Sequence record: MZ443783.1
Reading direction: 5' to 3' (one strand)
Length of the DNA stretch: 64,000 bases
Shown here one piece after another: positions 20,940 through 51,732 of this stretch. Made by a program: the position numbers and the translations under genes. The notes below the pieces were generated by a model. The model was not told where the DNA came from, did not search any database, and worked only from the letters and a program-made list of their open reading frames with translations. Position 1 is the stretch's first letter, and every line of letters begins with the position of its first letter.

Positions 20940-21445
20940 CCGAACTACCAATGTCTGCGGAGCAGGCCGAACACATCATGGCGAGTGTGTTTACTCTGGC
21001 CGGTGCTTCTAAATCCAAGCGCCGTGCGACTGCTGCAATGCTCATTCATTTTCATGACGGCTTCCCTACTATTATCAGTAGCGGTGTCAACGGTACTATG
21101 CCCGGCGAAAGCAACGTCATGGAAACTCCTGACCTGACTCTCTCGCTCAACACTGTTATCCATGCAGAGGTGAACTGCCTCAATCGCATGGAAGAATACA
21201 GTCTGTGGGCAAACGAACAGGACATTCTGTTCTGCACTGATTCGCCGTGTCCTAACTGCTTGGCGGATCTCGAAGCCGAAGGTGTGAAGACCGTTGTGTA
21301 TGCGCGTGAGTATCGCCTGACTGATCATCTGGACGCATCTTCGATTAAGATGTTCTGTCTGGATATGAAGTCCGTTGAGCACCGTATGCTTCGCGGTATC
21401 GAGCGCATGAACGAAGTTATCGCAACAACACCAGCGTCTGAATAA
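20924..21445 (+). CDS. dCMP deaminase
   Basis: SSGVNG, VIHAEVN, TDSPCPNC, VVYAREY. Confidence 0.85.
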   Translation: MRCNLTELPMSAEQAEHIMASVFTLAGASKSKRRATAAMLIHFHDGFPTIISSGVNGTMPGESNVMETPDLTLSLNTVIHAEVNCLNRMEEYSLWANEQDILFCTDSPCPNCLADLEAEGVKTVVYAREYRLTDHLDASSIKMFCLDMKSVEHRMLRGIERMNEVIATTPASE

Positions 21446-22171: not shown

Positions 22172-22654
22172 GTGGAACCTTTCCTGAAAGATATCAAAGA
22201 CCGTTTCGCTTCTGCATTGGGAATCGACCCTAAAGTTCTCGATGCGCCTGTGGACGAAGAATCCGCTGAACGTTTTGGTGCGTTCCTGCGTGAAGACCAG
22301 CGCAAAATCAAAGTAGGTCTTGCGCTCTGTCATCTCCAAATCCCAGATGATGTTCGTTATGACCTGCTGCATAATCATCTGGACACTACTGACCGTGTAC
22401 TGCGTGAAACGTTCGACGGTCTCGCTGCCCGACTTGTTGCTGTTAACAGCGCAGGTGGTGGCGATGAAAAACAAGCGGCGTCTGGTGCGTTTCGTCTGGC
22501 TATGCTGATGAACATTCTGGGCTTCGATGACCAAACACTGAAAGGTGTGTTAACCGACCCAAGCCTCTCTCGTCAGGCTGGTCTTATTGCAATGACTGGC
22601 CTGAACGATATGGGTCAGAAAATCCAATCGCTTTACGACGAGAAAACAAAATGA
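22172..22654 (+). CDS. hypothetical protein
   Basis: GTG start, AAGGA RBS. Confidence 0.6.
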   Translation: MEPFLKDIKDRFASALGIDPKVLDAPVDEESAERFGAFLREDQRKIKVGLALCHLQIPDDVRYDLLHNHLDTTDRVLRETFDGLAARLVAVNSAGGGDEKQAASGAFRLAMLMNILGFDDQTLKGVLTDPSLSRQAGLIAMTGLNDMGQKIQSLYDEKTK

Positions 22655-22815
22655 GCAACCCGACTAATCCATTAGCAGATTACTTCAACGCTGACGCAGT
22701 TATCCCAGGTGTAGACGATGCAGAAGATCGTGTCGAAGCTATGCGTGACGGTGGTGGCGAAGTTGTTGACGATAAAGATGCTGATGGCTGTGAAAGCGGC
22801 GCCTGCAAAATCTAA
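22651..22815 (+). CDS. 54-aa acidic peptide ending in a class Ia NrdA-type redox tail (not in the ORF track)
   Basis: Manual translation MSNPTNPLADYFNADAVIPGVDDAEDRVEAMRDGGGEVVDDKDADGCESGACKI*; ATGA overlap with the upstream stop. Confidence 0.8.
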   Translation: MSNPTNPLADYFNADAVIPGVDDAEDRVEAMRDGGGEVVDDKDADGCESGACKI

Positions 22816-22856
22816 CTCATGGGGCCTAGTGCCCCATTTCTGTTTTGGGGAATTTT

Positions 22857-23399: not shown

Positions 23400-23999
23400 A
23401 TGTACCAACAACTAAAAGAGAAACTCGTTTCATACGGTCTGGCTATTCACAATCGCCGCCAGGAAAATCGTCGTCGCCTCGCCGCCATTCGTGCAATCAA
23501 AGAAGATGAAATTCGCGGCGGTCAGGTGTGGACGAGCATCGCAAATGGTGCTGACTATCAGGTCCTGTTTCTGACTAACCTGTACACTGACGGACACATT
23601 CAGGTCGTGTACTCACGCCACTGGGCATACATCTCGTCAATGCCTCTCGAAGACTTCTTCGAGCAGTTCACACATAATCGCAGCGTCGATAATACTCTGG
23701 CTAGTGCTCATGATGATCTCATGGCTATGGCACACAACATGCGAAACGACGGACGCATCCGTAAACCTGAAGAAGGTGAATACTGGACTCGTATCGATCG
23801 CATACCAGATGGCTTCGATGAAGAACGCCATCCTAAATTCCGTAGCAGCCCTGTCACTGTTGAAGTGCATGGCATAGTAGAACAAAGCCCGTCACAACCA
23901 TTCGTGTTGTTCAAGGAAGGCGGCGAGCGCAAAGTCCTGAACATGTATATGTTCTTAAACTTCTATAGCCCAGAAGGTGAAGCAAATGATGCTGTTTGA
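23400..23999 (+). CDS. DUF1653-like repeat protein
   Basis: GQVWTS..YQVLFLTN..VVYS..PLEDFFEQF plus a second similar unit. Confidence 0.6.
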   Translation: MYQQLKEKLVSYGLAIHNRRQENRRRLAAIRAIKEDEIRGGQVWTSIANGADYQVLFLTNLYTDGHIQVVYSRHWAYISSMPLEDFFEQFTHNRSVDNTLASAHDDLMAMAHNMRNDGRIRKPEEGEYWTRIDRIPDGFDEERHPKFRSSPVTVEVHGIVEQSPSQPFVLFKEGGERKVLNMYMFLNFYSPEGEANDAV

Positions 24000-24636
24000 T
24001 ATCCTGAAAGCAATACCTGCGGTAATCCTATGCTACATCATCTGGCGTTATGCCATGAACAGGGTCGAACGCGACCGTCATCTCCTTAAAGCGCAGGAGC
24101 ATTACAATCATGGGCGTCTTGATAGCGGTAACGTCTGGATTCATTTGAAGACAGGCCGTCCGTATACGGTGTTGTGTCTGACTAACACAGGCGTGAATAA
24201 ATCCAACTGGCGCAATGATTGGGAGATCAACGTTGTATATACCAACGACTTCGAACAAGTCTGGAACAGGCCTTTCAGTGAGTTCTGTCATAAGTTCACG
24301 CACGTCAGCCGTGGCCCGAATGAGGAGCACTTCACAACTACTCTGATGGGTATGCAGATGGAAGCCAACACTCGCATTCTTATTCCGCATGAAGGCGAGA
24401 TGTGGTTTGAAGGAACTATTCATGCAACACCGCCAGAGTTGGTTGCCCAAGGCCATGCGCCTCAAGTTGTGTCCCAGCGCCGCGCTCATATAGACATGGT
24501 GCTCGGTGTAGGACAAGCGCATCCTGTAGTTGTATATACTGTAAACGATAAGCAGACAGCAATGCTGCTTTCGCAGTTCATCTTCATCTACCGCAAAGAG
24601 GTTTCCTTTGATGGGACAGTCAGCTCTAGTGTTTAA
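23986..24636 (+). CDS. membrane-anchored DUF1653-like repeat protein
   Basis: N-terminal TM; WIHLKTGRPYTVLCLTN..VVY..VWNRPFSEF. Confidence 0.65.
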   Translation: MMLFDILKAIPAVILCYIIWRYAMNRVERDRHLLKAQEHYNHGRLDSGNVWIHLKTGRPYTVLCLTNTGVNKSNWRNDWEINVVYTNDFEQVWNRPFSEFCHKFTHVSRGPNEEHFTTTLMGMQMEANTRILIPHEGEMWFEGTIHATPPELVAQGHAPQVVSQRRAHIDMVLGVGQAHPVVVYTVNDKQTAMLLSQFIFIYRKEVSFDGTVSSSV

Positions 24637-25820: not shown

Positions 25821-26124
25821 CCTGCTGGTAAAGATGTTCGGCCAGAACAAGCCATTCATCGTCGTGCGCCGTGACGCTATCGTGGAGAACGAAAAGCGTT
25901 TTGGTGATCGCGTTTACTTCTCTAATGGCGTTAACACCGTCACTGTGCCAAACATTCAAGGGCTTGACCTGGGTGATAAGCTCTACATTGCAGAAGACGG
26001 CGATGTGTATGAGTGGCATCCGCACTTCGAGCGCCCTTACGAAGCAGTATCGAACAACCAGACAGAAGCTCTGGCGTTTGGTCTGCATCCCATTGTCTTC
26101 CACACCGACACACGGAACAGCTAA
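25780..26124 (+). CDS. hypothetical protein
   Basis: Packed, coupled to thyA. Confidence 0.55.
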   Translation: MPTPVILLKQQTRDLLVKMFGQNKPFIVVRRDAIVENEKRFGDRVYFSNGVNTVTVPNIQGLDLGDKLYIAEDGDVYEWHPHFERPYEAVSNNQTEALAFGLHPIVFHTDTRNS

Positions 26125-27221
26125 TGTCACAACCACTTGATTTACGAAACCCGAACCACTACGAACTGTACTCTCTCCATAGCGTGGACGAGCAGTATAT
26201 CAACCTGTGCGATGCAATCATTGCTACTGGTACGCAAGAGTCCGATGCTGGTCGCACCGACGATACGTGGACGACTCTGATTGGCGTTGGCTTCCAGTTG
26301 CAGAACACGCACATTGCTTTCCCTGCGTTGCTATCCGCACGTAAGAACTGGAGCGCAGCCGTCGATGAGATGTGCTGGATGGCTCGCGGTGAAACGAACA
26401 TCAACACTCTCGGCTCTAAGATCTGGGACGAGTGGGCAGATGAAAGCGGTGAGTGCGGTCCAATCTATGGCGAGATGTGGCGCCGTTGGCCTGACATTAA
26501 AGCGTTCTTCGACTACACGCAGCCTATGGCGTCTTGCCCTACTGCCGATGTTATTCGTGTGCGTGACGAAATCCTGCGTATGCGTCAGGACGGCTATATC
26601 GAAACGCAACTGACTGACGGTCGCATCCTGTTTGAAGGTGAGATTGACCAGTTCGCTAACGCTCTGTATCACATTGAAAACCGTTCGCGTTCTCGCCGCA
26701 TTCGTGTGCAGGGTTTCAACCCAAGCTATGTGAACATGCAGGGTCTTCCTCCGTGTCACACTGAGTTTGAGTTCAACGTAACGAAGTCCACCAAGTACGA
26801 ACAGGCGCAGGCCGATGCCCGCGGTCAGACGGTAGCGCAGGACAGTCTGCATATCACTGTCACCATGCGCAGCAACGACTGCCTGCTTGGGCGTCCTTTC
26901 AACATCATCGGTTACAGTGCGATGCACCAACTGATTGCGAAGTGGGCTGGCCTGAACGTTGGCGGCTTTACGCTGAATACGACGAACACGCACCTGTACG
27001 ATCATCACCGTGAAGCATACGCCAAACAGCGTGAGCAGTGGATGACGTTGCGCGAGCGTATGCAAACAACTGGCGAGCCTGTGAAATATCCTGTGCTCGA
27101 AATCTCCGATGATGTTATCGGTCTGACAGCTAAAGAACTGCTGGACAACGTTAACATCGACTGGTTCGAGCTGGTGGACTACAGCCCGCTGCCAGCAGTA
27201 AAAGGACGTGTGACCAAATGA
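26124..27221 (+). CDS. thyA: thymidylate synthase
   Basis: EMCW, IWDEWAD, GPIYG, SRR, LPPCH, RSNDCLLGRPFNI, HLYDHH. Confidence 0.9.
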   Translation: MSQPLDLRNPNHYELYSLHSVDEQYINLCDAIIATGTQESDAGRTDDTWTTLIGVGFQLQNTHIAFPALLSARKNWSAAVDEMCWMARGETNINTLGSKIWDEWADESGECGPIYGEMWRRWPDIKAFFDYTQPMASCPTADVIRVRDEILRMRQDGYIETQLTDGRILFEGEIDQFANALYHIENRSRSRRIRVQGFNPSYVNMQGLPPCHTEFEFNVTKSTKYEQAQADARGQTVAQDSLHITVTMRSNDCLLGRPFNIIGYSAMHQLIAKWAGLNVGGFTLNTTNTHLYDHHREAYAKQREQWMTLRERMQTTGEPVKYPVLEISDDVIGLTAKELLDNVNIDWFELVDYSPLPAVKGRVTK

Positions 27222-29883: not shown

Positions 29884-32013
29884 ATGATCATCAAGCCGCC
29901 TACTATGAAGGAAATCAACAAGCTGGATAAACCCTGGCGTGGTATGAGTTTCTTCGCAGGTTGCGGTGGATCTTCTACCGGTCACAAGATGGCCGGTATC
30001 AACATCCTGTTGAGTAACGAGTTCGTGGATAGTGCCCGCGAGTCTTACGAAGCAAACCATCCGACTACTAAAGTGCTGCCGCATGATATTCGTCGTCTGG
30101 ACCCAAGCAAGCTCATGCGTTATTGCGGCTTGGCGAAAGGCGAACTGGATTTACTTGACGGCAGTCCTCCGTGCTTCACCGAAGACACCATCATTCATAC
30201 AGCAGACGGCATGAAGTTCATCTCGGACATGAATGTCGGCGATCAAGCAATGACCTCTGTTGGTCGTTACTTCCCTGTGTACGATACTATGGTTCGTCCG
30301 TACGTCGGCACGATGCACAAAATCGAAACTCTGCTGGGCGCAAACAACGCTACACCAGAGCATCCGTTCTTTGTCAGACGCAGCATTCCTACTGGCGGTT
30401 ACACTGACCCGTTCTGGTGTGATGCGAAAGACGTTCAGGAAGGTGATCTGTTAGGTAGCCCACGCACTACGCCTGACATGGGACTCGACGTGTATCAGTC
30501 GCAACTCGATCAGCTGCCGAAGCAGATTGCAGAGTGGAGCACATTCCCTGAGTTCTGGTGGATGGTTGGACACTGGTGTGATCGCGGTTCGATTGAAACC
30601 GTGAGTGGTGTTGAAGTCGTTAGCTTTGAATCTCACTCAAGCCTCGAAAATGCAATGATTGAGCAGGCGTTTGACGCGCTGAAAATCAGCAGCCTGAACC
30701 GTATCGACACGATGACAGCACAACGCAAAACGTTCCGTATCGTTATGGACGCAGAGCTGGTGCAGTTCTTACGTCGATTCGTATCTCAGGGTAACAACAA
30801 GTTCTCTCGTCGTCTGCCTGCGATTGTCTTCCACCTGACAGTCGAGTTGAAGCAACAATTCATTCTCGGTTGTGCTGGTCATGACTATGTGACTGGTATG
30901 GGTACCGGCTTGGCGATCACCTCAGATAGCCGTCGCTTCCTGATTGAGTTGAACTACCTGTGCTGTTCTGCATTCAACAGACCGCTGTTCGATGGTCTGA
31001 CTTGGGGCGACGTTTACTTCGGCAGCCCGATGACTCCGCGTGATCGTAACAGTGCTAAGCCTCTCATTGGCTTCCTGTTCCTGCAGGACGAGCACAACTT
31101 CTTCCACGAGTTCGATGACGCTGACCCGCATTTGTGGGTAGAAGTGATTGAGAACCTCGCGTATCAGGCAACCTGTGACGTGTATAACTTCTCCGTTGAG
31201 ACGGACGAGACATACGTTGCAAACAGCATGGTCGTTCACAACTGCAAAGGCTTCTCTACTGCTGGTGTGAAGGAAGAAGGCTGGGGCAAGGAAGTTAAAT
31301 ACAGCGACAACAAGTATCAGCAGGTAGATGACCTGTTCGATCAGTATTGTCGTATGCTGGAAGGCATGAAGCCGAAGGTGTTCACTGCGGAAAACGTGAG
31401 CGGCCTTGTGAAAGGTGCATCGAAAGGTTACTTCCTTGAAATCATGAAGGAGTTCGATCGAATCGGTTATTACGTCCGTGCGCCTATGCTCAATGCTGCG
31501 TGGCTCGGTGTGCCGCAATCGCGTGAGCGTATAATCTTCATGGGTGTACGCAAAGATGTTGCACACGCACTTGGTTACAAGACCGCTGCGACCGCTGTGC
31601 CGAATGTTATTCCGTGTGACAGCATGGCGTTCCTTGCCGATGCTCTGCCGCACATCCTGCGCTACAAGTCCACGAAGAAAGATATCATCACCTATCTTCC
31701 TGCGATGAACGGACCGATGCCTACGATTACTGCTGCCGATGCGATTGCATATGAGACTGCACGTTTCTCGTCTGCGGGATTCGTCGAAGACAACAAAGGC
31801 CATCGCCGTAAGCTGACTATCGACGAACTCAAAGTGATATCGGGTTTGCCCTCAGACTACAAACTGAAAGGCAAATTCGAAGAACAGTGGGAACGTCTTG
31901 GTCGTATCTGTGTGCCAGCAATGACACACGCCGCCGCTAAAGCGCTCATCGAACACGTCCTGATTCCTTACGCGAAGAAACGTAAGAAGAAGCCAGGCGA
32001 TATCTTTAAGTAA
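29884..32013 (+). CDS. C5-cytosine DNA methyltransferase homologue, intein-containing; candidate carboxymethyltransferase
   Basis: Motif I FFAGCGG, motif IV GSPP/CKGFS after splicing, VI AENVSGL, VIII PQSRERIIF, IX LTIDELKVISGLP, X ERLGRICVP. Confidence 0.88.
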   Translation: MIIKPPTMKEINKLDKPWRGMSFFAGCGGSSTGHKMAGINILLSNEFVDSARESYEANHPTTKVLPHDIRRLDPSKLMRYCGLAKGELDLLDGSPPCFTEDTIIHTADGMKFISDMNVGDQAMTSVGRYFPVYDTMVRPYVGTMHKIETLLGANNATPEHPFFVRRSIPTGGYTDPFWCDAKDVQEGDLLGSPRTTPDMGLDVYQSQLDQLPKQIAEWSTFPEFWWMVGHWCDRGSIETVSGVEVVSFESHSSLENAMIEQAFDALKISSLNRIDTMTAQRKTFRIVMDAELVQFLRRFVSQGNNKFSRRLPAIVFHLTVELKQQFILGCAGHDYVTGMGTGLAITSDSRRFLIELNYLCCSAFNRPLFDGLTWGDVYFGSPMTPRDRNSAKPLIGFLFLQDEHNFFHEFDDADPHLWVEVIENLAYQATCDVYNFSVETDETYVANSMVVHNCKGFSTAGVKEEGWGKEVKYSDNKYQQVDDLFDQYCRMLEGMKPKVFTAENVSGLVKGASKGYFLEIMKEFDRIGYYVRAPMLNAAWLGVPQSRERIIFMGVRKDVAHALGYKTAATAVPNVIPCDSMAFLADALPHILRYKSTKKDIITYLPAMNGPMPTITAADAIAYETARFSSAGFVEDNKGHRRKLTIDELKVISGLPSDYKLKGKFEEQWERLGRICVPAMTHAAAKALIEHVLIPYAKKRKKKPGDIFK
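30172..31242 (+). mobile_element. intein (357 aa) with degenerate LAGLIDADG blocks
   Basis: Starts CFTEDT, ATPEHPFFV, VYNFSVE..TYVAN, ends VVHN, +1 Cys; HEN remnants WMVGHWCDRGS and FILGCAGHD. Confidence 0.92.
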
Positions 32014-47897: not shown

Positions 47898-48431
47898 TTA
47901 GTATTTGATACGCAAGTCAGCGATGCGCAGAGGCTGGTTCATGGCAACAGTACCACCAACAATTTTCAGGTCAGCGTTAGAGTTCTCGTCGCCCACAGTA
48001 CCAGTGATGATGACGTAGGCGTTCGAACCAGTAGTGAAGCCTGCAAACGTATCAGCCGCAGAGGCAGTCTGAGCAAGACGCATCATGAACCACGTAGGAG
48101 TACCAGCAGCCGCAATCGTTGCCAAGTTAGCCTGAGCACTGAGCGGAATTTGCATGATATTGTTGTCCATGTCCATAACGATAGGCACAACGCCACACAT
48201 CACATCGCCAAGGAAATTCGCAGCAGTGGCAAACGCACTGATTGCCGATGCAGACCATGGCGCCGTAGTGGAAGCGGTGGTGATCATCGCACTCAACTGA
48301 GCGTCGGTCGGAGGTGTACCAGAAAACAGACCAACGTGAATCGTGTTGACGGCAGTGTTGCTGTTTGGAGGCATACGTTGGTTTAATGCAGCCATAGCCA
48401 TGAATGAGTTGTATGCTTTAGATATGCGCAT
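47898..48431 (-). CDS. virion fibre-like paralogue, short form
   Basis: Start MRISKAY at 48431; GLFSGTPP..GTPTWF..GTVGDENSNADLKIVGG..IADLRIKY. Confidence 0.65.
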   Translation of the reverse strand: MRISKAYNSFMAMAALNQRMPPNSNTAVNTIHVGLFSGTPPTDAQLSAMITTASTTAPWSASAISAFATAANFLGDVMCGVVPIVMDMDNNIMQIPLSAQANLATIAAAGTPTWFMMRLAQTASAADTFAGFTTGSNAYVIITGTVGDENSNADLKIVGGTVAMNQPLRIADLRIKY

Positions 48432-48432
48432 A

Positions 48433-49491
48433 TTAGTATGTCTCCAGTGAAATAGGCGTATAGGACACAGTGAACGAACCGACAGTTTGTTCCTGCCCTG
48501 GGTACGCTGTAGCATCCGCGATCAACAGGTCATAGCTTGAAGCCTGTTTCACATCATCCGTAATTGTCAGACCATAGTGAGGGAACCAACGACCATAGCT
48601 GTTCACGTTCATCGCCTGTGACATGGCTGGTATGCCATATGCAGTACCGAAACCGTGTGGGAACATGACAACGTGCTGCACTTTGCCTAAGGTGCGAGGC
48701 GCGGAGCCTGCTGCATAGTCACCGTAGAAGTGCAGAGCAAACGTACCAACACCGATGAAGAATGGGTTTGTTGCAGCCTTAGACACAATGCGGAAGCGAC
48801 GACCCTGAACGGTTGCAGGAAGCTGATAATACTTCTCAAAGTTACCAGAAGTCTGGAACAGGTTGGTGACTAGATTGGTCACATCCACCCATGAACTACC
48901 TTGCTGCACCTGCAAGAATAGCAAGTTAGCTGATGTATTGGCGAACAGGTTATTGTTCGCTGTAGTCTGTGTGATACTGGTCAGAGCGTTAATGACCACA
49001 TCGGCACCGAAGTCGTACTCGGCTAAAGTCCATGAACCTTCAGCGTTCTTGTTCTTAACGGTAGGAACGGAGGCACCTGAATTCGGGGCTGTACATGGCA
49101 TCTGAATTGCGGAGGTTGTTGATGCACAACGATGCCACAAAATAGTAGCGAACAGCATGTCCAGTTGATACTGCGCACTTGCGATCCCGGTATCAACAAG
49201 GTCTTGATACACAGTGCTGTAGCTGGCGAACGTTACTTTAGGCAAAACACGTTTTCCGCGATAGCCCTGAACCGTTGTCCAAGCAGGAGCGGGAGAAGAT
49301 TGCAGGCTAGTGGTGTTAGGAACCAGCGAGTGCTGCCCACCGCCAATCTGAGTCTGAATAAACGCACGACCACTGAGCATGTTGTTCAGAACGGTCTGCA
49401 TGTCGTAGTTCAAAGGGTTAGGAAGATTCCCTTCCATGAAAGCACCGTACATTACGGTAGGTGTATTTTGATAAATCGGTAGAATTTTCAT
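48433..49491 (-). CDS. virion fibre-like paralogue with a discoidin (F5/8-C)-like insert
   Basis: AEYDFGADV..LQVQQGSSWVDV..YQLPATVQGRRFRIV. Confidence 0.65.
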   Translation of the reverse strand: MKILPIYQNTPTVMYGAFMEGNLPNPLNYDMQTVLNNMLSGRAFIQTQIGGGQHSLVPNTTSLQSSPAPAWTTVQGYRGKRVLPKVTFASYSTVYQDLVDTGIASAQYQLDMLFATILWHRCASTTSAIQMPCTAPNSGASVPTVKNKNAEGSWTLAEYDFGADVVINALTSITQTTANNNLFANTSANLLFLQVQQGSSWVDVTNLVTNLFQTSGNFEKYYQLPATVQGRRFRIVSKAATNPFFIGVGTFALHFYGDYAAGSAPRTLGKVQHVVMFPHGFGTAYGIPAMSQAMNVNSYGRWFPHYGLTITDDVKQASSYDLLIADATAYPGQEQTVGSFTVSYTPISLETY

Positions 49492-49560: not shown

Positions 49561-50076
49561 CTACAGTTGGAGCGTCAGGTCGAGGAAGCGGTATGCTTGC
49601 CCGCTCTTAATCTGTCCACCAATAAACTGGAGTTCTGCATCAGAGCCTTGAGCACCAACAGTGCCTAGCCACACAGGTCCTGTAATACCAGAGCTGTAGT
49701 TGAAGCCTGCCCACGTGGCTGTAGCATTTGCTGGACAGATACGTGCGATGTAGTATGTAGGCGTACCGTCAGCAGCACCAGTAAGTGTACTTGCCATACC
49801 ACCTAGAGGCAGTGTGAGAGTGCGAGCCAATGCGTTAGGTTGAGGCGTCATTGCAGAACAAGCAACAGAACCTAAGAAGTCCGCCTGAACGGCACCCAGC
49901 GTAGTCAGAATGGTCTGGAAGTTCAGACTCGCTGTGCCTGCAATAAGGTCAAGCGCTTTACTCAACTGAGGGCGAGTGCCTTTGAACAGACCGATATGCA
50001 GCGTGTTCACTGCAATAGCCGATGCAGGAAATGCAGCACCTAATGCAACAAGTGATGCAGCTTTATTGTTAATCAT
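49561..50076 (-). CDS. virion fibre-like paralogue, short form
   Basis: GLFKGTRP..DGTPTYY..GTVGAQGSDAELQFIGG..FLDLTLQL. Confidence 0.65.
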   Translation of the reverse strand: MINNKAASLVALGAAFPASAIAVNTLHIGLFKGTRPQLSKALDLIAGTASLNFQTILTTLGAVQADFLGSVACSAMTPQPNALARTLTLPLGGMASTLTGAADGTPTYYIARICPANATATWAGFNYSSGITGPVWLGTVGAQGSDAELQFIGGQIKSGQAYRFLDLTLQL

Positions 50077-51152
50077 ACGCCTCTCCCTACTGCTGGCGAT
50101 AGCTTGGTGCGGAATGACGGTACATTGATAACGCCGAATGCCGTGTTGTAGCTCGCATCCTGCATGACGATATCATAGTTCGCAGCCTGCTTAATATCAT
50201 CAGTCACAGTAACGTGCAACATAGAACAGTAACGACTTTGGACAAGCGTAGGAACAACTGGTGCATTGAATGCCCAGGTTGTGCTCTGCGAGTAAGCAGC
50301 ACCTGCCTGCAATTGCAGCACCGTCATGTGTTTGAACTTGCCGAGTGTGCGTGGCTTCTGCCCTGTATACGTGGCGTAGAACTGCAAGCCAAACGGATAG
50401 TGCCCGAGAGTAGACCACGGCCATGACGTTGCTTTGTTCACGATACGGAACTTCTGCGCTTTAACCTTAGTAGGAAGTTCATACGTCACTACTTGGTTGT
50501 TCGTCACAGTACGCAGGTTGTCGTAGGTATGAATCACGTCAACCCATGCGCCGTTCACTTCTGCCTGCAAGTAAGTCTGGTTGGTACCCAGCAGCATCAG
50601 ACTTGAAACAGTAGAACCCATAGAATAACCTGCGAGAGCACCGAGTTCGATTTCGGCACCGAAGTCATACTCCGCACACAGATACCAGTTCTCTGCCGTC
50701 AGGCTATAGGCAGGACTCAGGTTGTTCGCAATACCAGACAGGAAGATATCTGACGTATTGTAGATGCGGTGTGCAAGCAAACAGGCAGCAACCGCTTCGA
50801 GATACGTGTTAACCGTGCTGGCGAAGCGCGGGTCAACTGACGGCAACTTGATCTTAGGAACGATGCGCGTCTTTGTGGAGAACGCAGGGCCGTAACCGTA
50901 AGTAGCGCCCGTGTATTCAATCCATGCAGGAAGAAAGTGCGAAGTATCGAGAGTCGAGATCGCATATGGCGTATACTGCCAACGACCAGGCGCTGTACCT
51001 TGCAGTGTGCGCACAAACAAACGCATAGCAATAGCGTCGTTGATAGCAGAGTGCAAAGTCTTCTCACCGTTTGCAGGAGCGTCCGTGTCATGCAGGAGCC
51101 CCAAACAGATTGCGGAAGACTGGCTCAACACTTGATAAGGAAAGAGTTCCAT
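50073..51152 (-). CDS. virion fibre-like paralogue with a discoidin-like insert
   Basis: Start MELFPYQ; AEYDFGAEI..LQAEVNGAWVDV..YELPTKVKAQKFRIV. Confidence 0.65.
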   Translation of the reverse strand: MELFPYQVLSQSSAICLGLLHDTDAPANGEKTLHSAINDAIAMRLFVRTLQGTAPGRWQYTPYAISTLDTSHFLPAWIEYTGATYGYGPAFSTKTRIVPKIKLPSVDPRFASTVNTYLEAVAACLLAHRIYNTSDIFLSGIANNLSPAYSLTAENWYLCAEYDFGAEIELGALAGYSMGSTVSSLMLLGTNQTYLQAEVNGAWVDVIHTYDNLRTVTNNQVVTYELPTKVKAQKFRIVNKATSWPWSTLGHYPFGLQFYATYTGQKPRTLGKFKHMTVLQLQAGAAYSQSTTWAFNAPVVPTLVQSRYCSMLHVTVTDDIKQAANYDIVMQDASYNTAFGVINVPSFRTKLSPAVGRGV

Positions 51153-51153
51153 G

Positions 51154-51732
51154 TTAGCTCCATGTGATATTGTTGAGACTGATAGTGCCGTTAAGGTTAA
51201 ACGTGCCATCACCGTTATCAGTCAAAGGAGCGCCCATAGCAATCAGGTCCTGAGGCGTTAGCTCAATCACCGACGCAATGGAAACAGTACCAGCAGCAAT
51301 GGCTGTCGCTGTAGTGCCGAGCAGAATATACATGCGGTTGAATGCTTTTGCATAGCTGAAACGACCGAGCAGATTCAACGTATCAAACATACGCTTGCCG
51401 TTACCCAGATTGACGATACGGATATTACCTGTAGAGATTGGAGCAGTGTCCATCACACAACCAGGCAGGTTCGCAGTCAAATATGTGCGTAGCGTGTTCA
51501 GGCTGAAAACAGCCAATAGCTGGTTGTTCCAGATCGTGTCCGTGATGATATCGCCGGTGGAGAACACGATAGCAGCCGGGCGTTCGGTACTGATAGTTGT
51601 GCCAGCCCCTTGAAGATTGCCAGCATTAGCGGAAGCCATTGTGCTGGCCATCCACGGTAGCTCAACGCCTGGGTTAGTCGTAGAGCCGAGCGATTCACCA
51701 CGCATGTTGAGCATAGCTTTTGAGATATACAT
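51154..51732 (-). CDS. virion fibre-like paralogue, short and divergent
   Basis: MYISKAM start like 47898; AIVFSTG; coupled. Confidence 0.55.
   Translation of the reverse strand: MYISKAMLNMRGESLGSTTNPGVELPWMASTMASANAGNLQGAGTTISTERPAAIVFSTGDIITDTIWNNQLLAVFSLNTLRTYLTANLPGCVMDTAPISTGNIRIVNLGNGKRMFDTLNLLGRFSYAKAFNRMYILLGTTATAIAAGTVSIASVIELTPQDLIAMGAPLTDNGDGTFNLNGTISLNNITWS

Follow-up and report, generated by a model that had tools for sequence, protein, structure and literature searches.

A conserved small gene of jumbo phages encodes a peptide resembling the C-terminal redox tail of ribonucleotide reductase NrdA

In the Erwinia jumbo phage pEa_SNUABM_28 (MZ443783.1; Alexandravirus; 267 kb; host Erwinia amylovora), we identified a small gene whose 54-aa product ends in a close likeness of the flexible, cysteine-containing C-terminal tail of NrdA, the alpha subunit of class Ia ribonucleotide reductase (RNR). 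Judged from its sequence, the peptide probably acts on the host's supply of DNA building blocks. The reading we prefer, to which we assign a probability of about 0.4, is that it is a trans-acting mimic of the redox tail of the host NrdA, engaging thioredoxin (Trx) or glutaredoxin (Grx), the NrdA active site, or both. The stretch of DNA analyzed, referred to below as the window, comprises 64,000 nucleotides, and its coordinates are those of the MZ443783.1 record.

The small ORF occupies positions 22651-22815 of the plus strand (54 codons plus stop; ORF list and GenBank), and its product has the C-terminus ...MRDGGGEVVDDKDADGCESGACKI. As read from the sequence, its start codon overlaps the stop codon of the preceding ORF in an ATGA junction (22651-22654, plus strand), an arrangement typical of translational coupling, and both the junction and the start context are also kept in the Alexandravirus relatives. 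The position, the coupling and the NrdA-like C-terminus had been described in a first-pass annotation, and all three were borne out by the sequence, the ORF list and a PDB sequence search. The same annotation listed the ORF as unannotated, which holds for its own ORF track only: GenBank carries the gene as CDS pEaSNUABM28_00035 (QZE58592.1, hypothetical protein), and the homologues are annotated in every relative examined. The coupled upstream ORF (22172-22654, plus strand) encodes 160 aa that are predicted, with low confidence, to be all-helical (AlphaFold pLDDT 54.6, a model too poor for a fold search), and it matched no Pfam family, no PHROG family and no solved structure. It is the partner of the small ORF solely in the Alexandravirus and Y3 lineages, with 50% identity to Y3 gp037; no counterpart was found in Yoloswag, and in PCH45 and Miami another gene lies upstream of the homologue. 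Directly 3' of the small ORF, the transcription unit is ended by an intrinsic terminator (22819-22847, plus strand; terminator scan) consisting of a 7-bp GC-rich hairpin (22819-22837) and a T run. The same hairpin is kept 3' of the homologues in loci L013-L022, and other terminators are found 3' of those in Miami, phiR1-37, FBKp24 and JA11. The placement of the ORF among nucleotide-metabolism genes, also proposed in the first-pass annotation, agreed with Pfam matches to a dCMP deaminase encoded two genes upstream (20951-21445, plus strand; PF00383, E = 2.4e-10) and a thymidylate synthase (ThyA) encoded 3.3 kb downstream (26124-27221, plus strand; PF00303, E = 2.2e-56). The dCMP deaminase gene order is the same in Y3 and Yoloswag, where the homologue is likewise found amid the genes for dCMP deaminase and ThyA.

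Several other features were observed in the window. The ThyA protein has 365 aa, and the 266-position Pfam model covers its residues 23-363, which implies that ~75-100 residues are inserted relative to a typical ThyA. Just past the downstream neighbour of the small ORF, two plus-strand genes (23400-23999 and 23986-24636) encode mutual paralogues (24% identity, E = 4e-12), the first of which shows a weak match to phrog_4767, a family with no function assigned. The gene at 29884-32013 (plus strand) encodes a 709-aa C-5 cytosine DNA methyltransferase (PF00145, E = 1.6e-38) with Hint and intein-splicing domain matches within residues 96-453, and appears to contain an intein. On the minus strand, a two-gene cassette is present in duplicate (47898-49491 and 49561-51212), with 36% identity between 47898-48515 and 49561-50076 and 27% identity over 355 aa between 48433-49491 and 50073-51212. 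No tRNA or tmRNA genes were detected in the 64-kb window (ARAGORN, 1-64000).

In the PDB sequence search, the final 10 residues of the peptide were identical (10/10) to residues 752-761 of E. coli R1 (NrdA), both stretches being anchored at the C-terminus; the E-value of this match (1.5-2) is weak because the matched stretch is short. The NrdA proteins of several Erwinia species end ...QDDGCESGACKI and have the same final 10 residues as the small ORF. When searched by tblastn, residues 735-761 of E. coli NrdA matched the small ORF, which was the sole NrdA match in the window, and the earlier statement that no nrdA body lies upstream in frame thus extends to the window as a whole. The reported likeness is real and longer than first noted, running for 23 residues from RDG to the terminal Ile (residues 32-54; 22744-22812, plus strand). 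This segment is the counterpart of the class Ia NrdA flexible tail in its entirety; in peptides of the Alexandravirus type the likeness starts at RDG, past the last structured element of NrdA. A genuine 760-aa NrdA, encoded in an Advenella genome, also has a tail of 23 residues, 61% identical to that of the small ORF; it was found in a pattern scan of genome contigs in which, among the at least 600 matches listed, this genuine NrdA alone was confirmed. At the DNA level, the nrdA 3' end shares 87-90% identity with the last 31 nt of the small ORF in 5425 of 5426 complete E. coli genomes. CESGACKI or CEGGACKI forms the C-terminus in 117 of the 120 tails listed as closest to that of E. coli NrdA, nearly all of these 120 being from Enterobacterales.

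The part common to the whole phage family, and matching NrdA at the profile level, is the last 12 residues (DADGCESGACKI; 22777-22812, plus strand), which include the first and second tail cysteines of the small ORF, Cys47 (22789-22791, plus strand) and Cys52 (22804-22806, plus strand). Alignment of the phage-family profile with NrdA tails gave P = 4.8e-7 and a probability of 92.5% over the last 12 columns (hhalign), and the phage-family HMM scored NrdA at 16 bits versus 7.8 bits for the best unrelated six-frame segment among 8133 (hmmsearch). The NrdA-type features present in the small ORF are the flexible C-terminal tail and the cysteine pair at the extreme C-terminus; Pfam detected neither the ten-stranded catalytic barrel (PF02867, PF00317) nor the ATP-cone (PF03477). 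A Trx/Grx fold was likewise not detected by Pfam, and the peptide is predicted to be disordered, with its cysteines at the extreme C-terminus and not at a helix N-cap. In the AlphaFold model (mean pLDDT 54), short helices are predicted at residues 7-11 and 24-32, followed by coil from residue 33; both the low confidence and the coil are as expected for a flexible tail. The tails of class I and class II RNRs are unstructured and re-reduce the active site via disulfide exchange (PMC9531940).

Comparison of the small ORF with six close relatives revealed 3-11 synonymous and 0-3 non-synonymous differences (dN/dS 0-0.12), and dN/dS was 0.2-0.3 against three distant relatives. The small ORF is a real gene under purifying selection. 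It is 94-96% conserved in relatives in which neighbouring genes are down to 45-65%; in Dickeya phage AD1, for example, the peptide is 96% identical and the two upstream genes 45-51%. A word-indexed protein search with the 54-aa ORF returned 2 near-identical matches only, and the family was therefore collected by tblastn against phage records. This search, which the first-pass annotation had suggested as a check on conservation, recovered the homologous module in about 85 phage records; with the low dN/dS values and a conserved family, the ORF is conserved and very probably not a decayed fragment, contrary to two of the outcomes that the annotation had named as counter-evidence. The carriers include Alexandravirus, several pEa_SNUABM groups, Dickeya phages JA11, JA13, JA29 and JA33, and AD1. 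Further carriers are Y3, Yoloswag, the nucleus-forming Serratia phage PCH45, the Klebsiella Miami group, FBKp24 and KpLz-2_45, Salmonella phages SA002 and SPLA10, Yersinia phages phiR1-37 and fHe-Yen9-02, and Proteus phage 10. The recorded hosts of the listed carriers are almost all Enterobacterales (Erwinia, Dickeya, Serratia, Klebsiella, Salmonella, Yersinia and Proteus). Stenotrophomonas phage BUCTxx100 (OR529409.1, locus L004) has the gene order of Klebsiella phage Miami over 8 kb and a 98% identical module; its host assignment or range looks odd, since Stenotrophomonas does not belong to the order of Klebsiella. Two IMG/VR scans returned mostly the GenBank phages again, together with one new 273-kb contig, and when 1.84 billion representative proteins were searched exhaustively with HMMER, just six clusters were obtained at E <= 0.001, from metagenomic contigs of up to 268 kb. 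With so few clusters among so many proteins, the family is rare and restricted, to the extent observed, to phages.

Seventeen members, from 17 phages or contigs, aligned as a single acidic, disordered module of ~45 residues and scored 66-86 bits with the family HMM. The module opens with an acidic D-x-[FL]-D, followed by an amphipathic acidic helix, then usually by GGGE[VIA], then by an acidic linker, and it closes with C-x(2-4)-C-x-I. The C-terminal C-x(n)-C-x-I is invariant in the 17-member alignment, and the small ORF fits the module definition. Between the two cysteines, most members have a spacing of 4, SNUABM_37 and SPLA10 one of 3, and Y3 and Yoloswag one of 2. This spacing varies although the NrdA tails of the hosts have Cx4C, so that selection does not keep exact mimicry. 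The family-level match to NrdA is confined to the last 12 columns; GGGE[VI] and the N-terminal acidic helix are without NrdA counterpart. In most members the module is free-standing (44-61 aa), and in others it forms the C-terminal end of a longer protein: SA002 and metagenomic L028 (164 aa), SPLA10 (282 aa), metagenomic P0128 (259 aa), Yoloswag gp034 (146 aa) and JA11 (84 aa). Three kinds of fused N-domain, that of SA002 and L028, that of SPLA10 and P0128, and that of Yoloswag gp034, are mutually unrelated. In SA002 (L038:3138-3629) and L028, N-domain and module are joined in one 164-aa protein, and in pEa_SNUABM_37 (L045:2087-2635) the SA002-type N-domain and the module are encoded by two adjacent genes of 108 and 61 aa. 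For the fused N-domains we found no Pfam family, no match to a solved structure and no recognizable redox or metal fold. Pfam, PHROGs and PDB sequence searches were otherwise uninformative for the small ORF, its neighbours and these N-domains.

No NrdA was found in either of the two whole module-bearing genomes scanned, those of pEa_SNUABM_16 and PCH45. The first (whole, 266.8 kb; 99.6% identical over a 2.1-kb query region) served as the twin genome of the window phage. With E. coli and Colwellia-phage NrdA and NrdB as tblastn queries, neither NrdA nor NrdB was detected in the twin genome or the window besides the tail of the small ORF. The sparse RefSeq annotation of the twin lists no RNR, and 10 large hypothetical non-structural ORFs had no RNR domain by Pfam; the exclusion of class II and III RNRs, drawn from these 10 ORFs and the sparse annotation, is less rigorous. 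A paper on the related PaBG family names DHFR, ThyA, Tmk and dCTP deaminase, with no RNR among them. One role offered in the first-pass annotation, that the peptide completes a tail-less phage RNR, is thus refuted for this lineage, and the phage nrdA without a tail that it had proposed to look for elsewhere has no match in the twin genome, where tblastn found no phage nrdA at all. With no NrdA of phage origin, the sole NrdA in the infected cell would be that of the host. A crude motif scan of the twin genome gave no convincing thioredoxin- or glutaredoxin-like ORF, so that any reductant would also be the host's. Outside the window, pEa_SNUABM_16 encodes a 506-aa radical SAM protein (L009:21207-22727, record 221207-222727; PF04055 and PF13353; annotated as hypothetical) with no link to the small ORF.

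The whole genome of PCH45 contains, in addition to the module, a host-like orphan class Ia NrdB (L048:24783-25889, record 124783-125889) that is 80% identical to E. coli NrdB and has an NrdA-binding-type C-terminus; no NrdA was detected in it. An NrdB and a module in a genome where NrdA was not found suggest two accessories for the host alpha subunit. Host-like NrdB (78-80% identity) is also encoded by the jumbo phages OBP, Ea35-70, N1M2, Kc263, AH04 and pEt-SU, none of which is among the phages with host-like NrdA. The 52-kb phiEcoM-GJ1 group has a host-like NrdB as well. According to a recent review, few genes are conserved in more than half of jumbo phages, and that for the RNR beta subunit is one of them. 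Host trxB, encoding thioredoxin reductase, contributes to PCH45 infection as seen by host Tn-seq (PMC11797060). The PCH45 homologue is the 101st CDS; a phage transposon study, whose numbering matches the GenBank order, does not mention the 101st CDS in its text. In phiR1-37, RNA-seq reads for g117, a divergent homologue without the GGG run, were 3.9, 1.5 and 1.2 versus 10^3-10^4 for its neighbours (PMC4848604 Table S2).

From these data we infer that the peptide may enter the host thiol relay that recycles RNR. Host thioredoxin or glutaredoxin-1 would reduce its two cysteines like those of the native tail, and the reduced peptide would then pass electrons in trans to the oxidized NrdA active site, serving as a spare tail and allowing more dNTP to be made; alternatively, it would compete with the native tail for the same partners. 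We lean towards the supporting role over the blocking one, because the phages need the host RNR and because PCH45 also supplies NrdB. In its most specific form, the proposal would be that jumbo phages of Enterobacterales have shed their own RNR alpha subunit and encode a diffusible dithiol arm for the host NrdA. Once charged by Trx or Grx, the arm would re-reduce NrdA in trans, the re-reduction bottleneck would be gone and more dNTP would be formed, in some phages in joint work with the phage-supplied NrdB. In this full form we hold the proposal to be doubtful. Arguments against tail mimicry itself are the restriction of the family-level NrdA match to the last 12 columns, with the conserved GGGE[VI] and acidic helix as extra elements, and the barely transcribed divergent homologue in phiR1-37. 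The native tail is tethered to NrdA and has a high local concentration, so that the kinetic gain from a free copy is not obvious. In addition, the fusions to unrelated N-domains in SA002, SPLA10, Yoloswag and the 259-aa metagenomic protein suggest that the module may serve those proteins.

This last point leads to the main rival reading, in which the module is a generic swinging dithiol arm that carries electrons or metal for the upstream or fused phage protein and not for the host RNR. If so, the module and the NrdA tail would be alike not through a common target but through a common solution, namely a flexible acidic arm that Trx or Grx reduces. At least three unrelated N-domains carry the module (SA002/L028, SPLA10/P0128 and Yoloswag gp034), SNUABM_37 encodes the SA002 N-domain by a gene of its own upstream in a Rosetta-stone pattern, and the small ORF is itself ATGA-coupled to the 160-aa ORF. 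The variable cysteine spacing, and a conserved GGGE and acidic helix that are foreign to NrdA, point the same way. However, the upstream partner differs between lineages (PCH45, Miami, JA11 and phiR1-37), no N-domain has a recognizable redox or metal fold, and in Alexandravirus identity is 96% for the small ORF but down to 51% for the upstream gene. Neither ten residues exactly as in the host tail nor a match at the DNA level would be required of such an arm, and we consider a generic arm somewhat unlikely. The same tail evidence that underlies our preferred reading would serve equally for a decoy or inhibitor, which would sequester Trx or Grx, or fill the active-site cleft of NrdA in a Sml1-like competition for the tail docking sites, and would thereby dampen the thiol relay or the dNTP synthesis of the host. 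In yeast, Sml1 is a competitor of the C-terminal CX2C tail of R1, and the extra N-terminal acidic helix of the phage peptide could raise its affinity. A phage without RNR nevertheless relies on the host NrdA to replicate a 267-kb genome, the host-like NrdB added by PCH45 points to boosting of RNR, and host trxB aids rather than hinders PCH45 infection; a decoy therefore appears improbable to us.

Two further origins for the ORF were tried and given up. That it is a decaying, functionless 3' remnant of a former phage nrdA would agree with its last 31 nt, which resemble the nrdA 3' end, and with the near absence of transcription of the distant phiR1-37 homologue. This candidate was rejected on the purifying selection (dN/dS 0.05-0.3) and is very improbable, the more so as the family is kept across jumbo-phage lineages with little else in common, the ORF has its own start codon, coupling and terminator, its conserved N-terminal half is unrelated to NrdA, and tblastn of the window and the twin genome found no second fragment of nrdA. 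No more credible is that the ORF provides the tail that a tail-less phage NrdA would need, or that it is the precursor of a double-glycine-leader peptide that is cleaved and exported. The former was rejected because tblastn detected no phage NrdA in the twin genome, which is without NrdA or NrdB. For the latter, a GGG run does precede the Cys-containing end, and the radical SAM protein of 506 aa and an ABC-type ATPase are encoded elsewhere in the twin genome, but these genes lie 40-200 kb off and show no linkage to the module in other phages. In the neighbourhoods examined, the module gene has no annotated peptidase-type exporter beside it. As counted by hand, the hydrophobic leader positions of the small ORF do not fit what we take to be the double-glycine leader consensus. 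The precursor candidate was rejected since the GGG motif is not conserved: phiR1-37, FBKp24 and Proteus phage 10 are without the GGG run and have kept the tail.

Ribonucleotide reductase alone supplies DNA precursors de novo, and complete RNR genes or orphan beta subunits are known from phages. To our knowledge, no gene for the electron-shuttling tail of the alpha subunit alone has been described. A full-text literature search with the tail string returned no paper, and in the literature searched we found no description of, or published function for, a free-standing NrdA tail; the jumbo-phage papers are silent on it. If the peptide does join the host relay from Trx or Grx to NrdA, it would represent a minimal form of viral metabolic takeover and would offer a natural probe of how the tail docks with redoxins and with the active site, the step of class Ia RNR turnover that is least understood. 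It would also help to explain the dNTP supply of RNR-less jumbo phages with genomes of ~260 kb. Should it act as a spare tail, this would be the first virus supplying just a mobile redox arm of a host enzyme; should the module instead be a generic arm, a new portable redox module would be defined.

Among known proteins, members of the family matched three small phage protein clusters with no function assigned (phrog_10239, phrog_24014 and phrog_14561), weakly and over the module (E 2e-4 to 0.05); the best PHROG match of the small ORF was phrog_24014 (E = 0.038). The similarity to yeast Sml1 is one of concept only, both being small, partly disordered proteins with a possible action where the R1 dithiol tail docks; there is no sequence relationship, and Sml1 is an inhibitor without the tail cysteines. 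The closest likeness is to the class Ia NrdA tail (Cys754 and Cys759 in E. coli), with which the peptide shares identical last 10 residues, a last 23 residues alignable from RDG, cysteines four residues apart, a K-I end, an acidic flexible linker and predicted disorder. In contrast to that tail, the phage peptide is a separate 54-aa molecule without barrel, ATP cone or other NrdA sequence, it has an acidic N-terminal helix and GGGE of its own, and the cysteine spacing in its family ranges from 2 to 4. The orphan phage nrdB genes (phiEcoM-GJ1 group, PCH45, OBP, Ea35-70 and N1M2) likewise provide one piece of the host class Ia RNR and no alpha subunit, and both they and the module presumably work with the host NrdA; PCH45 has both. 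NrdB is a complete subunit of known role, whereas the module is a 12-23-residue fragment of alpha set in a novel peptide, and the window phage has the module and no NrdB. On present sequence comparisons, the module is best placed beside orphan nrdB, as a putative auxiliary piece that phages contribute to the class Ia RNR system.
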